Part shown: one piece after another, positions 44,003 to 51,839 of the stretch
How positions within the stretch are numbered: the first letter of the stretch is position 1
Layout: every line of letters begins with the position of its first letter
NCBI GenBank assembly: GCA_977016875.1
Contig: CDRNST010000013.1
Coordinates: forward strand, 620,001-684,000
Direction: 5' to 3'
Length of the DNA stretch: 64,000 nucleotides
Source of the DNA: Pavona decussata
Lineage: Eukaryota
The notes under the pieces: model-generated
What the model was told of the DNA's origin: nothing
The model's database searches: none
What the model saw: the letters and a program-made list of their open reading frames with translations, nothing else
Made by a program: the position numbers and the translations under genes

Positions 44003-46455
44003 TGTATCACTGCTAAATGTAATACAAACCATAAATGTAATAAACTTTTACGTTAAATGTAATAATCTACCCAACTGTAAATGTAATACATTTTAACGCT
44101 AAATGTAATAAATTTACCAACCATAAACGTAATACAACATAACGCTAAATGAAATAACCATGTCAACCTTTTGAATAGGGCAAAGGATTCTCAACCTTCT
44201 ACAAGCGATTTTCATGGCTAGTTTTTTTTTTTTTTCATATCACCCTTCTTCAAATTATTTTTCCCTGAAAAATTATTTAATTTTAAATATGTTCCTCTGC
44301 ATAAGCTAGTTTTTGCACTTTTTATTGTTAACAGTAATAGTCTGTAACAAAGAATCAGAAACAAATCTTATATTGGAACAAAATCTGTAAGTACTGTAAT
44401 TAATTACCGATCATTAAGAATAACTATAGGTCATTTGAAATGTATAAATATGAAATATGAATTGAACTTTCTTCATGTAGCATCGAAACAGAACAAACAT
44501 GAACAATATAATGACCTGATTAACGTGAAAATCATTTCTTGGTAGTCTTAAAAAAGTGAAAACTTCAATTACGATAAGGTCCTTAGTAATTATCCTATAT
44601 TGGGTTCAATTCTTGTTTTTATTTCTCCATTTGATAGCCCTTATGTAAAACCAAGAGCCTGTTCCAGTGTAAAGAAGTCATACCCATGCATGAATCCATT
44701 GTGGACTGTCTATTATGGCCTTAAGAGCTAAAACCAGCCCACTTCCTCTTCCCCAGTTCCTGCAAATCTCCCTCATACTGTGATATCCAATTTAAATATC
44801 TCTGTCATAACTTATTTTCGGTAGCCTCTGAATGTGTGGTGTAACTAGTCTTCTGAAATGGGTGTTGAGAGCACATAAACTGTTGTATGTAGCAACAGTG
44901 ATTCTGGGACTTTCGCGTTAATGGAAAGTCAACAATAAAGCTTAGAACTTCAATTGGAAGACTTTCTATGAAACAAATTCCATCGCCATCGTTTATAGCA
45001 TTTATGATCAAGTTTCCTGGGCGGATATCTTCATCCACGTGATCTTCTGAAATCTCGTCACATTCGTTTGCGTTTCCATTTTGATCTGCATTGCCCCAGA
45101 TGCCATTGTCTACAGCATACTCATCATCAGTTTTGTTGCTGACGGATACGACCATTTTTTCTTGAGACTCTTAATTTCCACTGATCTCTTCAACCGCATG
45201 ACCCTGGGAAATCACCCCATTTTTATATGCGTGGCTCTCTAAAATGTTTTCATCATTGGGATTAAAATCGTGCTGCTTTAAAATGTTATCTAGATCCTTT
45301 TCCACACAATTTACTTTGGTCTGCACGGTGTAATCTGGAACTCTTAGACAGACATTTTGAATGCCGTCATTTTCAGGGAAATGTGCCAATGTGAATGGAG
45401 CAATGGGTTTAGAATTTTGTGGGGAAATTATTTTTTGTACGTCTGGCCCTAACGAAGATATAACGACCAGCTTTTCATTATAAACATTTCCCATTGCCTG
45501 TAGGCTAATATGGTCACCATAAGCACCTTTGTGGCTCATATTTGCTAAGACCACGGAACCCCGAACAAATAGCTGAAAAAAGTGAAAACGGTCTTGGGCA
45601 AGTGGATTATTGTTGAGATAATCAACAATTTCCTTCCGCAGAGTTTCTTCCGAATGCAATATGCCAAGATGTTGAAGAAACCAACTTAAAGCTGCAAACT
45701 GGCAGTTACCATCACTGGCTGGGTTGAAAGAAACTTCGTAACCTTGATCGATCGAGGAATGGTTGATAATAATCCTGTGTTGTCATAACAATGCAAAACT
45801 TTTCGATGGTCCGATTTCTTAGTGTCCTTCTGTTTATCTTGATTTGACTGAGTCAAATGTCCTCGTGCAGCTGGTCTTTTACGTTTCTCCTTCCTGGCCG
45901 TTAGGCTAGTTATTTCCTCTACTGACACCCGTTGGGTGCACGGCTGTTGGGTTTTGGGGGATTCAAAAGTTATCTTGTATTTCCCAGTTGGAAGGTTTCG
46001 TTTCAAAATTTTCCCTCCAAAACAAATCTTTTTCTGGGAGCATCCCAACTTTTCCGGAAAAATGGATATCTAATCAGTACTGTTTCTCTAACTTTGTATA
46101 TAGATGGGGGATTGCCTTTTATCTTTCTTCGGATGTACCTTTTATCCCAAATGTTGTTTGAAGTTATTGCTTTAGAGCGAAAGCGGCAAGATTGGTCAGC
46201 GCGCTTCAAATAGTCGGACTCCTTATGATTTATTATTAGTCGCACAAGAACTACTTTGTTTGTAGGTTTTTCCACCCTCCACCATCTGAGTTAAGGCATT
46301 GGACTCCCAACAATAAAACACTTCAAAGAGGGATTGCCTACCGAGCACATCCATGGGTTCCTCGTTTAAAATTTTTTTGATATTCCCTCAACTTGGACGC
46401 CCAGTTTACTCCAACCTTTGAGAATCTAAGTAGATCAAAAGAAATCTTTTTCCGC
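44003..46455 (-). mobile_element. 3' half of a Ginger-like DNA transposon: integrase C-terminus, OTU protease and F-box-like tail, with TGT terminus
   Basis: KVGVNWASKLREYQKILNEEP...FEVFY; PPSIYKVRETVLIRY; NPASDGNCQFAAL...YGDHISLQA (OTU); terminus TGTATCACTG with TAAATGTAATA array 44013-44160. Confidence 0.75.
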
Positions 46456-46639
46456 TGTGACCTGTTTTCTATGTCATCAATTTTATCTTGTAGATCTGCA
46501 ATCTCATTCTCAAGATCATCCAGTTGTGTTCATGAGTCGCTGGGAGTTGCATTTCTATGGTGGCCCATCGCTGCCATGGGCATTTTTACCTTTTATGTAT
46601 ATTTTTTAGATTGATCTTCGTTTTCTTTTCACTTTCATT

Positions 46640-47230
46640 ACAAAGTCATTTGCAAACGAAAATGATTTCCAAAAAGATATACATTTGCAAAATCATTTGC
46701 AGACGAAAATGATTTTAAAAAATAATTCATTTGCAAAATCATTTGCAAACGAAAATGATTTAAAAAATAATTCATTTGCAAAATCATTTGCAAACGAAAA
46801 TGATTTAAAAAGTAATTCATTTGCAAAATCATTTGCAAACGAAAATGATTTTAAAAAATATTTACATTTGCAAAATCATTTGCAGAGGAAAATGATTTAA
46901 AAAGTAATTCATTTGCAAAATCATTTGCAAACGAAAATGATTTTAGAAAATATTTACATTTGCAAAATCATTTGCAGACGAAAATGATTTTAAAAAATAT
47001 ATACATTTGCAAAATCATTTGCAAACGAAAATGATTTTAAAAAATATTTACATTTGCAAAATCATTTGCAGACGAAAATGATTTTAAAAAATATTTACAT
47101 TTGCAAAATCATTTGCAAACGAAAATGATTTTAAAAAATATTTACATTTGCAAAATCATTTGCAAACGAAAATGATTTAAAAAAAATTCATTTGCAAAAT
47201 CATATGAAAATGAAAATGATTTTAAAAATG
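46640..47230 (+). repeat. 45-47 bp minisatellite (~12-13 units) in the left TIR
   Basis: Unit ATTTGCAAAATCATTTGCAAACGAAAATGATTTTAAAAAATATTTAC. Confidence 0.95.
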
Positions 47231-47322
47231 TAGCAGCCCATTGCTGCCATAGCCCATGGTGCATTGCGATTCCTGCTCTACGAGGAGACTAGGTTCTAAT
47301 GTCGGTTCTGGTAGTTTACAAA

Positions 47323-47790
47323 ATGGCGGCTTGTGCACCTTGGAAGAATTATCAGAAAAATATGGCTCAAAAACAGTATGGAAAAGCTAAAAATCTGGTT
47401 TTAGAAAGACGCTCCATGATAGTACAGAGGCTAAGCTCCGAAGATTCGGGTAAGGCTCAAAAATACGCCAGCCAGGGCGCCCGTGAGTTTGTACCATAGG
47501 AGTACGAAGATTTCACTCTGGACAACCTGAATGCTGCATGCAGGCAGCATTTTTCCGGAGACCAAACTGATGAGTACGTCTATGATTGCGACGTATTGGT
47601 TGGCGAGCTTGGACCATCCTGTAACTCGGTCGATCAGCTTCCTGATACAAAAGTGATATACATCCGGTTTATTGACGAAACTGAAGAAGATGATGGAAGT
47701 GAGCGAAGCCGAAAGTCTGGGGCGAAACGAAAGCGGCCAGTTAAAGCAACAACCACAGACACAAAACGATTTGTGATTAGTGCTAGCAAT
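47323..47790 (+). pseudogene. Truncated left-hand ORF of the IS3EU-like element
   Basis: MAACAPWKNYQK...VQRLSSEDSGKAQKY...REFVP*EYEDFTLDNLNAACRQHF...CDVLVGELGPSCNSVDQLPDTKVIYIRFI reads as one frame with one stop. Confidence 0.65.
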
Positions 47791-48849
47791 GCCAATGCTA
47801 AAGAGAAGTTGTTAATTGATTTGATATTATTTTTGAGATACCAGAAAATAGAGGATATTACATGACATGGGGAGATACAAATTGGTTGAGTGTTGAAAAT
47901 ACATCTCATGAGTGAGAAGCAAATGTATCATGAAAATGTTGGGTGGGGTTGAATACAGAAAATATATGAAAAGTGAGAGGGGCTTTCTGCAGTCCCACCA
48001 AGAACTACGGAGTGTCTACCTAGTTGTTGCTGTTCAAGAAAATTTTCCTCTCATTTTCACCTGCATGAATATTTTTGCAGTAACCCTATCACCTCTTCAC
48101 CAAAAAAAACTTACACAGAAATGAAACCTTCTAGCAGAAAATACAGTCTTTAAACTTTAAAAGGTTATATAAACAAGCCTTGTAGCTTAAATTGTGGCGT
48201 GACACAATTTGTTTTCCATGGACACCCCGCTTGTGTGGACATCTCTACACAAGGGTGAGCGTGTCTGTTATATAAAGGTTACACTGTATTGCAAGTTGTC
48301 CCAGCAAATTTCATTTTTGTGACAGGAAAGCTTTGGTTAAGCAAATCAGTCAAATGTTTGTTGTGCCAGCATTTGGAAAGTAGCATTTCTTGGCTAATTG
48401 TTCAATGCAACATGATTCCCGTACAAATATTGGTCTGAAAAAATATCTAGAGTTCACAACTCTAAAGAAAGCCATATTTACGCTTGTTCAAACTACAACT
48501 GTATTACAGAAAATGTTATAAACGAAAACAGAAAAAAAAACTACATCTGGGAAACTTTCTGCCTCCAAGTACTACTGGTATTTCTCACAATGTTCATCAT
48601 TTATTTAGAATGTTGTTTTATTAACAATGTTAGAGCGGTTTTCATGTGACTGTACTGAAACCACAGTACATGTAATTACACTATTTCTGAATAGGAGTAA
48701 TTGCAAATTACTCGCAACGGTCATGTCAAATCCACTCTATGTACTCCCATCCCACTGGCTATTTGCAAACTTTGTATGCCAGGATGGTCTACCAGTATTT
48801 TCACTGTTAGAAGACAGTGCTATGGAACCTAAAGTTGCCACTACTCTCC

Positions 48850-49030
48850 ACTGAATCTGTCTTTCAAATACAAAAACGCATCCACCCCAATCAGTTGTTT
48901 GAACATCATGAACATTGGGGATGAACTGTTCACACTTTGCTCTAAACTGGGGTTCAAGGAAGTCATGTCAAGCACTCCAGAATGTTCAGCTGCCTCTTGC
49001 AGTTGCTCATCTGTAACTGGTAAACCTTAT
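48850..49030 (-). pseudogene. Last exon of the right-hand (putative integrase-core transposase) gene of the IS3EU-like element
   Basis: Acceptor then LPVTDEQLQEAAEHSGVLD...DAFLYLKDRF; start MAARAP at 50286; catalytic core not seen. Confidence 0.45.
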
Positions 49031-50374
49031 ATAAAAGGAAGATTGATGTGTCATTCTAAACCTAGAAAAGGGAAATAGAATAGTCTTTGAACAGGCTCTC
49101 CAGTAACCTCCTATGCAGGCGCTTTAAAGTTCCTTGGGAAAAGCCCTCCAGGCCCACAAGAAATACTATTAGCTACAGTTGCGACATCACAAAAAATAGG
49201 CAGACAAATGTAACAAGCATGTGCAAAGCTTGCAAAAACATTTAACCTGGAAAACAGTAACTGACTGTAATCACAGGTTGGGCATTTCTGGTTGTTTTTT
49301 CCCCGATCTCCATACTAAATATCAAAGCTTCAAGGACTAAATAAAAATGATAATTTAAGACACTACTTGTAAACTGTAAAATTAACAAAATTCTATAAAA
49401 TAGCTGTACCTACCCCACAGTAGGTTTTTAGAAAATCTGAAGGGTAGGAGGGGAGTTACGAGTTTGGAAGTCTGATTACAGGGGGGTCCTTGCTTGGCTA
49501 GGGGGAGGGGGGTATGTATGGATATTTTCTGGAATTAACCAATAAGCTACTCCCACCATCCACACTAAAAAAATCTATAGGCTTACCATCTTCAAATGAA
49601 AAGAAACATCCTGACACATTTTCTGCTAATCATAAGCCCTTGCAAATGCTCTTTAAAACGATATAGCCCCAGGGCATCATTTTTTAATTTTACGGTAGTT
49701 GGATACAGAGTGGTGAAGAGGGAATATCAATCACGAATGAAAATTTTATATGGTTTCACAGGTGATGAAGAACCATTTCTCTCTAAAGTCAAACTTGACA
49801 ACGCTTGAACTCGTAAGATGACTAAAACGCTGTGGTACATTGCTTATCTTAGTTAGAATTTTTCAAGCAGGCTAAGATGCTACCAAAAAGTGCACATTCT
49901 AATTTAGATAGAGAGCATGGTTGGCTCGAGGTTGACTCGTGGCTCGAACTTGACTCGGGCTCAAGCTACTTGTTACTCTCAGAGAGAAAGGGGGATCTAA
50001 ATCTAAGACTTCTAACTGTATCAAATTTTGTTCAAAGCATACATATTTTGATTGAGTACTCCTTGGGCAGCTTACGCTAATAACACAAGGGGCGGCATTA
50101 AGGGGACGATTTCAGATGAGCTTGATTGAGTTCTCTCGTGTTCGTTTCATTGGTATATATTTCGTATGTTTTTCTGGGAGCAAAAAAACACACATGAAAA
50201 GCAAAGATTATCCTGATCAAAAGAACCATACCTTGAGAATCGTGTGATTTCTTCGCACTATCATTCTTGGGTGCACGAGCTGCCATTTTGTAAACGTACT
50301 AGAACCTAGTCTCCTCGAAGAGCAGGAATCCTAATGCACCATGGGCTATGGCAGCAATGGGCTGCTACATTTTT

Positions 50375-50875
50375 AAAATCATTTTCGTTTTTAAATGATT
50401 TTGCAAATGATTTTGCAAATGTAAATATCTTTTAAAATCATTTTCGTCTGCAAATGATTTTGCAAATGAATTTTTTTAAAAAATCATTTTCGTTTGCAAA
50501 TGATTTTGCAAATGTAAATATTTTTTAAAATCATTTTCGTCTGCAAATGATTTTGCAAATGTAAATATTCTTTAAAATCATTTTCGTTTGCAAATGATTT
50601 GCAAATGAATTATTTTTTAAATCATTTTCGTTTGCAAATGATTTTGCAAATGAATTATTTTTAAAATCATTTTCGTCTGCAAATGATTTTGAAAATGTAA
50701 ATATTTTTTAAAATCATTTTCGTCTGCAAATGATTTTGCTAATGAATTATTTTTTAAAATAATTTTCGTCTGCAAATGATTTTGCAAATGAATTATTTTT
50801 AAAATCATTTTCCTTTGCAAATGATTTTGCAAATGTAAATCTTTTTGGAAATCATTTTCGATTGCAAATGACTTT
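50375..50875 (-). repeat. Inverted copy of the 45-47 bp minisatellite (~11 units) in the right TIR
   Basis: Reverse complement of 46640-47230. Confidence 0.95.
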
Positions 50876-51839
50876 GTATTGAAAGTGAAAAGAAAACGAA
50901 GATCAATCTAAACAATATACATAAAAGGTAAAAATGCCTATGGCAGCGATGGGCCACCATACATTTCCACTTGCTTGCTCGATCTTCCCACCTTTCAAGT
51001 CTTTCACTTCAGCTTACATGAATTCAAGGGTTTGCCGTAGATCACTGATCTTCTCAAGAATAACATCAATATGCTTGTTTGTCACCTCCTTGTGCACACG
51101 AAACATTGCAGATATAGTAGACTCTTGTAATTTAATCAGTTCCCTTACTTGTGAAAGGGTCACAAACTCAAGGTCACCCTCCTCTGTTGAGTTTTGGTGG
51201 GAGCGAACTTTGGAACGTCTGCTAACTGTGATGTCTTGTGCAAATTTAAAAATAAAAAATAACCATTGTGGAGCTCCGCTTTTAGGCTTGGCTAAATATA
51301 TATTTTAGGGTGGTCACTTTTGTTTTCAATTTGATCAAGTGTCCTCGTTTAACTATTACTAATGCTTCAATGCTGACAAGAAGGTTTGCACGAGACAGTC
51401 TGTAGTCCTCTGTAATGATGGCTGCTAAGTTTTGATTACGTGACTTGTGTCATCGTTTTTTTTTTCATTCAATGGTTGTAGTTTCCGTCAAATAAAAGCG
51501 GTGCTGACTGTAACTTACAATAGCCGATGAATATCAGCTTCTGTCACGTTATAGACTGCCTGTCTTCAGCATCTGTGCACATAATTGAATGAACATCTGA
51601 CAAACTACTGAAAAGAATCTCTTTTCTGAATGATACTATAACAGTTCAAATCCTGTAGGATATAGTTGTCTCTATGATTATGTCCTTAAAAATCCTTGTT
51701 CAATATTGCGTGTTTATTAATTTTGAGTAGTTACTGTGACATTTTCAGATATAATTGTTTTTTCGGTACACATAATGGATAAGGTATGGGATCGACATAA
51801 GGATAATCAGGGATGTAATAAATATTTTCGTCTGCCAGC

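Follow-up and report, generated by a model that had tools for sequence, protein, structure and literature searches.

A decayed IS3EU/GingerRoot-like transposon from the coral Pavona decussata and the probable cassette structure of its inverted ends

The window analysed here, a 64,000-nucleotide stretch of the genome of the coral Pavona decussata, contains at positions 46556-50961 a cut-and-paste element of 4,406 bp. Direct reading of the sequence places TATGG at 46556 and CCATA at the opposite margin, ending at 50961; the element opens with TATGGTGGCCCATCGCTGCCAT from 46556, and the reverse complement of TATGGTGGCCCATCGCTGCCAT closes it at 50961. It is bordered by a target-site duplication of exactly 6 bp, CATTTC, identical on the left (46550-46555) and on the right (50962-50967). 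The left inverted end, on the side of an alpha-kinase gene remnant, covers 46556-47322 on the forward strand (767 bp up to the ATG), and the right inverted end, on the transposase side, covers 50287-50961 on the reverse strand (675 bp up to the ATG). Over the outer 166 nt the two ends are 96% complementary, further collinear blocks that are shifted by whole repeat units are 91-96% complementary, and the symmetry dies out about 797 and 702 bp into the element. These measurements bear out the initial annotation, which had reported the duplication, the termini and inverted repeats of about 785 and 690 bp that differ mainly in the copy number of a repeat unit; the difference in length amounts to roughly two 47-bp units plus a 12-bp leader indel. 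The outermost feature is a terminal motif in which TGGCCCA-nnnn-TGCCAT(A/G)G comes after TATGG (46556-46580, forward strand), which is conserved across all related families. A 22-nt terminal pattern has 40 genomic matches at ≤3 mismatches against none for a reversed control, and the structure of the window element is not due to chance.

The interior of the element contains the remnants of two convergent genes. The alpha-kinase remnant (47323-47865, forward strand) comprises only the N-terminal region: homology extends over 47341-47697, an in-frame TAG lies at 47497-47499 and there is no kinase domain. This left ORF is the N-terminal third of the alpha-kinase gene of the family and matches its residues ~5-135. 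Facing it, a C-terminal transposase remnant of 63 residues (48844-49026, reverse strand) corresponds to residues 345-407 of a 408-aa relative with 41% identity. The start on the transposase side, MAARAPKND... (50230-50286, reverse strand), is conserved as DNA in two further copies, C2 and C96, and the resemblance of the right ORF to intact transposases is limited to the first few codons. A candidate splice donor after MAARAPKNDSAKKSHDSQ was dropped: the transposase of intact relatives is single-exon, and past the opening codons the sequence shares no homology with it. Nine internal ORFs of the element were scanned against Pfam and gave no meaningful match. Of the transposase, the window copy has the first codons and residues 345-407; because the DDE core has been lost and only these ends kept, it counts as a non-autonomous derivative rather than as an autonomous member of its family. 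Lacking the kinase domain as well, the window copy is dead and inert on its own. The insertion site is filled in all three DNA samples of one study, and no empty-site joint was seen in these contigs. The element sequence is absent from RNA-labelled runs, one of which shows just short dispersed repeats; since the data are assembled contigs only, these observations prove neither silence nor fixation.

The family to which the window copy belongs occupies three loci in the coral genome and has no autonomous copy. The initial annotation had looked to paired copies with 6-bp duplications elsewhere in the genome and to an integrase core in longer copies. For the exact family no second paired copy was found genome-wide, the other two loci (C96 and C2) being one-ended fragments without transposase remnants; the sister families provide paired elements, and their termini are all the same as those of the window element. 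Perfect 6-bp duplications flank five of these paired relatives (C142, C196, C397, C90 and C161), which brings the number to six including the window copy; two (C120 and C219) have no duplication, and that of C191 is imperfect. A looser search recovered small paired elements of 259 bp (C161) and 91 bp (C31), while 17 further single matches to the terminal motif have no partner within 9 kb at ≤6 mismatches. The integrase core is indeed present in longer sister-family elements, as Pfam PF24764 matches in the transposase pieces of C196 and C120. Full-length anthozoan homologues of the transposase match PF24764 at E-values of 1e-19 to 1e-22, and their HTH_21 and IS3 signals are weak. The opposite gene in the relatives matches Alpha_kinase (PF02816) at E-values of 4e-30 to 7e-35. 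In intact relatives the DDE transposase measures ~406-425 aa and the alpha-kinase ~430-480 aa; on C43 (912062-915741) an open alpha-kinase frame of 440 aa and an open transposase frame of 425 aa converge, about 2 kb apart, and intact 425-aa transposase frames are found on C43, C61 and C117, three elements known from their coordinates and open-frame lengths alone.

The two ends of the window element resemble each other as far as the genes that they flank. The ATGs lie at 47323 on the forward and at 50286 on the reverse strand, and both ends share a stretch, ACAAAATGGC(G/A)GCT(T/C)GTGCACC, that runs into the ORF starts MAACAP and MAARAP. The inverted symmetry thus enters the first codons of two inward-facing ORFs, with ATGGC(G/A)GC on both sides, just as had been proposed, and it extends to ATGGCGG in three related families. 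Gene models from Exaiptasia and Dendronephthya, made independently, begin at the same codons; in Exaiptasia, LOC110237033 and LOC110237035 share one contig. To have the start codons inside or bordering the inverted repeat is a design common to the whole family. Upstream of the left ATG, a TATA-like box (47220-47229) is followed by a second, inner occurrence of the terminal motif (47233-47252) and then by the conserved tail CCCATGGTGCATTG, the whole occupying 47220-47266 on the forward strand with an equivalent motif in 12 of 12 ends; on the right side, comparison of the ends places the inner copy at 50332-50365 on the reverse strand. This second terminal-motif copy lies upstream of the gene start in each of the 12 ends examined, and wherever ATGGCRG was located it is found 43-79 nt downstream of the inner motif. 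In most ends an A-rich box of the (A)TAAAAAT type is situated just upstream of the inner motif. The TATA-like box sits in DNA of 79-88% A+T, and the pattern could be partly compositional. The conserved TATA-like box, the position of the ATG and the inner motif together suggest that the cassette may act as a promoter. The initial annotation had envisaged one duplicated promoter/ATG cassette driving two convergent genes; the repeat does reach both start codons, in three families, and as the genes here are fragments nothing functional is driven in the window copy.

Between the terminal and the inner motif the ends are dominated by a tandem array of a 47-bp unit, which on the left occupies the AT-rich spacer (46641-47228, forward strand; 12.7 copies, 91% matches by Tandem Repeats Finder) and on the right covers 50402-50876 (reverse strand; 10.3 copies, 89% matches by the same program). 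The unit had been described as a hairpin. Every unit does contain a 10-bp palindrome, AAAATCATTT / AAATGATTTT, but the predicted folding is weak (-4.7 to -6.2 kcal/mol, z -1.1 to -1.5) and indistinguishable from that of shuffled sequences. A genome search confines the unit to the three loci of the window family, so that the array is not a free satellite, and the suggestion that it might seed one finds no support. Nor is there support for the further proposal of a transposase-binding platform: the array is family-specific, and the motifs that the families have in common lie on either side of it. No conserved spacer motif was found between families (7 shared 7-mers; shuffled controls average 4.8 and reach 13), whose spacers are alike in AT-richness only. 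A functional array, either as a multimerised binding platform for the transposase of this one family or as an enhancer-like multiplication of promoter elements, with copy number tuning activity, would fit the copy numbers at the family's four ends (12.7, 10.3, 4.8 and 6.7), the palindrome in each unit and the small tandem duplications in the equivalent spacer of sister families (83 bp x2 and 44 bp x2.2). We nonetheless consider it unlikely: the unit lacks the motif conserved across families, both the shared 7-mers and the hairpin energies fall within the range of their controls, and the family, reduced to three loci of which none is autonomous, is near extinction in this genome, so that long arrays have brought it no visible success. 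The 47-bp array is probably a lineage-specific expansion of the AT-rich spacer, and it is the growth of this spacer into an array that gives the ends their foldback-like look.

We read the window element as a decayed, non-autonomous DNA transposon of the IS3EU/GingerRoot superfamily whose ends would be mirrored motif/spacer/ATG cassettes and whose array would be a spacer expansion, and we put the probability of this reading at roughly 85%. IS3EU elements are characterised by TA..TA, typically TAYGG..CCRTA, termini, 6-bp duplications and oppositely oriented genes for an integrase-type DDE transposase and an alpha-kinase, and they occur in corals and other cnidarians (PMC6839031; Kojima 2023, PMC10045372; Kojima 2025, PMC12730594). 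The window element has such termini, it shares the 6-bp duplication with five relatives, and the alpha-kinase gene lies opposite to the transposase gene both in the relatives and, as a remnant, in the window copy; an integrase-type DDE transposase is encoded not by the window copy itself but by longer relatives with the same termini. The IS3EU-like identity put forward initially is thereby upheld. The window element departs from the published pattern in lacking both catalytic domains and in the length of its ends, which at 675-767 bp exceed the published inverted repeats of ~30-150 bp because of the 47-bp array. Two-motif ends and start codons within the repeat are not described in these three papers.

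Capture of gene fragments has been reported for GingerRoot elements (PMC6839031), the interior of the window element is unique at the DNA level and its left ORF is a fragment without a kinase domain, features that would suit Pack-type capture, with a piece of a cellular alpha-kinase gene fused to the start codon of the repeat. However, many diverged related families have the alpha-kinase gene at the same place, ~270-480 bp inward of one end, and in the same orientation, its pairing with an oppositely oriented transposase has been published for fungal IS3EU, and no closer parental host gene outside transposons was found: the best paralogues share just 40-52% protein identity, and the ones inspected are themselves parts of such elements. 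Host cargo is thus largely refuted and very improbable as an account of the left ORF; both ORFs are the alpha-kinase and transposase genes that belong to the family itself rather than arbitrary cargo. A different, FB/MULE-like superfamily that mimics IS3EU is refuted, for although it is a foldback hallmark to have long inverted ends of tandem repeats, the duplication is 6 bp and not ~9 bp, the termini are TATGG, and in place of MULE-type coding capacity there are IS3EU-type coding remnants on both sides and intact IS3EU-type sister elements.

The anatomy of the element, its kinship with other families and what its two gene remnants once were are matters of observation, and they suggest how such ends might work. 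Each end runs from the terminal motif (TATGG, then TGGCCCA-nnnn-TGCCATAG) through the AT-rich spacer to the TATA-like box; after this come the motif again, in direct orientation, a leader of some 40-100 nt and the ATG. Intact relatives carry two convergent genes, each starting some hundreds of bases in from one end, and since both ends are built alike, both genes start from near-identical inverted cassettes. The two motif copies may be binding sites for the transposase, the inner one coupling binding to expression; a transposase bound there, on the core promoter, would feed back on both genes. Homogenisation of the ends would reach to a variable degree into the coding regions: it spans six shared codons in the window family, and on C86 and C153 a 48-codon transposase N-terminus is copied ahead of the alpha-kinase gene. 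The AT-rich spacer that separates the two motifs would be able to grow freely into arrays. As a model for IS3EU ends in general, in which inverted copies of promoter, 5'UTR and ATG serve the transposase and the alpha-kinase alike, with feedback through the motif on the core promoter, homogenised ends and a freely expanding spacer, this is a tentative proposal to which we give somewhat less than an even chance.

Parts of this scheme have counterparts in better-characterised transposons. MuDR of maize, a member of the Mutator superfamily, combines the transposase gene mudrA with a convergent helper gene, mudrB, and has a promoter for one of them in each of its ~200-bp inverted repeats (PMC8224964). 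Its operating logic matches the cassette logic proposed here, but its transposase belongs to an unrelated superfamily, its duplication is 9 bp, it has no alpha-kinase, and its promoter function has been shown experimentally whereas for the window element we infer it. Foldback elements of the FB type share long inverted repeats that consist largely of short tandem units, in numbers that vary between ends and between copies; the likeness is structural only, the duplication length, termini and genes of the window element being those of IS3EU. In the P element a transposase or repressor site overlaps the promoter, and both binding and repression have been demonstrated. A binding site at its own core promoter would permit autoregulation, which is the role proposed, from its position, for the inner motif of the window element.

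IS3EU/GingerRoot is among the least studied superfamilies of DNA transposons, and the literature consulted says little about it apart from its termini, the length of its duplication and the genes it carries. In itself, the window copy is an ordinary dead derivative whose sole consequence for the host is the interruption of single-copy DNA. Together with its relatives in the same genome, the locus provides a concrete map of the ends, with two direct motif copies, an AT-rich spacer capable of expansion and start codons that lie in the repeat, and this map opens to testing the sites of transposase binding, the way in which the two genes are expressed together and the purpose of the alpha-kinase.

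The transposon occupies 46556-50961 (4,406 bp) and, read directly in the window, lies between two copies of a CATTTC target duplication (46550-46555 and 50962-50967). It opens with TATGGTGGCCCATCGCTGCCAT at 46556, and its closing bases at 50961 are the reverse complement. The ends are 96% complementary over their outer 166 nt, and deeper in, collinear blocks 115-158 nt long show complementarity of 91-96%, offset by whole tandem units; Tandem Repeats Finder reports a 47-bp unit in 12.7 copies on the left (46641-47228) and 10.3 copies on the right (50402-50876). Up to the start codons at 47323 (+) and 50286 (-) the ends measure 767 and 675 bp, respectively, and the inverted symmetry passes through ACAAAATGGC(G/A)GCT(T/C)GTGCACC before fading ~797 bp (left) and ~702 bp (right) into the element. 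The initial annotation, which had described the 6-bp duplication, inverted termini, ends of tandem units and symmetry into the ATGs, is confirmed. It had also cast each unit as a hairpin: the palindrome (AAAATCATTT / AAATGATTTT) is indeed present inside each 47-bp unit, but its fold as single-stranded DNA is weak (-4.7 to -6.2 kcal/mol, z -1.1 to -1.5), many shuffled sequences folding equally well. The flank adjoining the insertion (46100-46555) is single-copy in the genome search, and ~0.8 kb upstream of the insertion a 203-aa open frame (45174-45782, -) carries an OTU-like cysteine protease domain (PF02338, E 2.7e-8).

According to Kojima (2023, PMC10045372), TA..TA termini are invariable in complete IS3EU families, 6-bp duplications are the usual case, and IS3EU groups with GingerRoot in a single clade. 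Fungal IS3EU elements combine TAYGG..CCRTA ends and 6-bp duplications with an oppositely oriented transposase and alpha-kinase (Kojima 2025, PMC12730594). GingerRoot was described by Cerbin et al. (2019, PMC6839031) from sea anemones and a coral, Acropora digitifera, with inverted repeats of 100-150 bp. Across the P. decussata genome (602 Mb, 1,180 contigs) the 22-nt terminal pattern, allowing up to three mismatches, has 40 matches against none for the reversed control, and inverted pairs are frequent among them. Paired relatives exist, as do longer copies with an integrase-core gene, both of which the initial annotation had required. The 6-bp duplications are perfect on contigs C142 (5.7 kb, CTTGTG), C196 (5.5 kb, CAGTTC), C397 (5.5 kb, GACCTG), C90 (1.1 kb, CTGGAC) and C161 (259 bp, C161:1877028-1877286, CACTAT), imperfect on C191 (6.3 kb), and absent on C120 (4.9 kb) and C219 (3.2 kb). 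A 91-bp element with the same termini (C31:1700125-1700215) has a duplication matching at five of six positions; it and the 259-bp element are MITE-sized derivatives of the superfamily. The long relatives contain two convergent genes, the first matching the integrase core domain PF24764 and the second an alpha-kinase (PF02816, E 4e-30 to 7e-35). Full-length anthozoan homologues of the transposase (406-408 aa) have PF24764 hits with E-values of 1e-19 to 1e-22, their HTH_21 and IS3-transposase signals being weak. Judging from coordinates and frame lengths, 425-aa transposase frames are intact on C43, C61 and C117, and C43 also has, ~2 kb from its transposase frame, an alpha-kinase frame of 440 aa on the other strand, in convergent orientation. 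Sequence features thus support the IS3EU assignment, all those open to testing (termini, 6-bp duplication and the transposase/alpha-kinase pair in relatives) agreeing with it. IS3EU is an already known superfamily; what is unusual here is the very long, array-filled ends.

Both genes of the window copy are dead fragments of the canonical pair of the family, and the copy is a decayed non-autonomous derivative. Its left ORF (47323-47865, +), interrupted by one in-frame TAG (47497-47499), matches residues ~5-135 of the alpha-kinase proteins of relatives at 36-48% identity and ends before the kinase domain. An origin of this piece as captured cargo is rejected; it is the element's own second gene. 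On the right, likeness to the transposase start (MAARIRN...) is limited to the first few codons (MAAR...); residues 345-407 of the transposase are matched at 41% identity at 49026-48844 (-), and the right end is therefore the transposase side. Neither the DDE core nor the kinase domain remains, and short dispersed repeats occupy the interior. One stretch of ~75 bp (47846-47916) has counterparts of ~80% identity at 35 or more dispersed loci; it is probably a small repeat, nested or shared, of MITE- or SINE-like type. Another (49922-49962, an 18-bp unit repeated 2.3 times), with many genome matches arranged as inverted pairs ~950 bp apart, resembles a terminus of a different short element with inverted repeats.

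The terminal 105 nt, array and leader occur genome-wide at three loci only, namely the window copy and single ends on C96 (4.8 array units) and C2 (6.7 units). About 0.8 kb of right-hand interior is common to the C2 and window copies, and an insertion of ~1.2 kb (L006:3570-4738) splits the C2 array from the leader and inner motif; transposase remnants were found in neither the C96 nor the C2 fragment. Downstream of the C96 copy (L005:4699-5766) lie two open frames, one protein-kinase-like, which by eye look unrelated to the element. The array had been proposed as a satellite seed; it is absent from the genome outside these three loci, and therefore no satellite has been seeded here.

Comparison of paired ends shows the inverted symmetry reaching the start codons in three diverged families, which supports the view that the inverted repeats carry them. 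It extends ~six codons beyond the ATG in the window family; the C120 family has a repeat of 430 bp, 98-99% identical, that finishes on both sides in AAATGGCGG; the nearly perfect repeat of the C196 family halts ~20-50 nt before the ATGs, yet both leaders finish in ACAACATGGCGG. Gene models of other species have the same first codons (MAARIRND..., MSEKDWKDF...). An inner motif, which is a direct copy of the terminal TGGCCCA-nnnn-TGCCATAG, is present in each of the 12 ends examined (six families or more), and after it comes a conserved CCCATGATGCATTG-like tail. Most of the 12 ends have an A-rich (A)TAAAAAT-type box that finishes a few nucleotides upstream of this motif, and ATGGCRG, where located, lies 43-79 nt downstream. 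The spacer between the two motifs is poor in G+C (12-21%). Sister families have short stretches of it duplicated in tandem (83 bp x2, 44 bp x2.2), and it is exactly the segment occupied by the 47-bp array in the window family. No spacer 7-mer is conserved beyond composition (7 shared, against a control mean of 4.8 and maximum of 13), and the suggestion that the array is a transposase-binding platform finds no support. On C86 (L044:4377-5906) and C153 (L045:3863-5374) the promoter-like cassette is doubled in tandem on the alpha-kinase side, the outer cassette including the first 48 transposase codons in frame with the alpha-kinase (a 482-aa chimeric open frame), which suggests that copying between ends can reach into coding sequence. 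Elsewhere, five direct copies of the terminal-like motif TATGGTGGGCCATCGTTACCAT lie 12.4-14.5 kb apart (C233:1621404-1673924), a spacing that suggests a tandemly repeated segment with one end of a related element inside.

Four DNA-like sequencing runs, from three samples of one study, contain the locus, all runs being searched as contigs. The flank-to-end junction is present in all three samples and the empty-site joint in none, which in contigs from one study is no proof of fixation. Contig depth within the element peaks at 49922-49962 and 49416-49579. RNA-labelled runs contain none of the locus sequence, which in contigs is no proof of silence; the contigs of one run guessed to be RNA hold short dispersed repeats only.

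A promoter function of the ends is plausible from sequence. In maize MuDR, mudrA and mudrB have their promoters in the inverted repeats of ~200 bp (PMC8224964); the likeness lies in two genes with their promoters in inverted repeats, shown for MuDR and inferred here. The core promoter of each gene would consist of a TATA-like box and the inner motif, in which case mirrored cassettes within the ends would express both genes. Both motif copies may be transposase recognition sites, the inner one being placed so that binding would couple to expression, and the array would represent a lineage-specific expansion of a length-tolerant spacer. The transferable outcome is a two-motif map of IS3EU ends.
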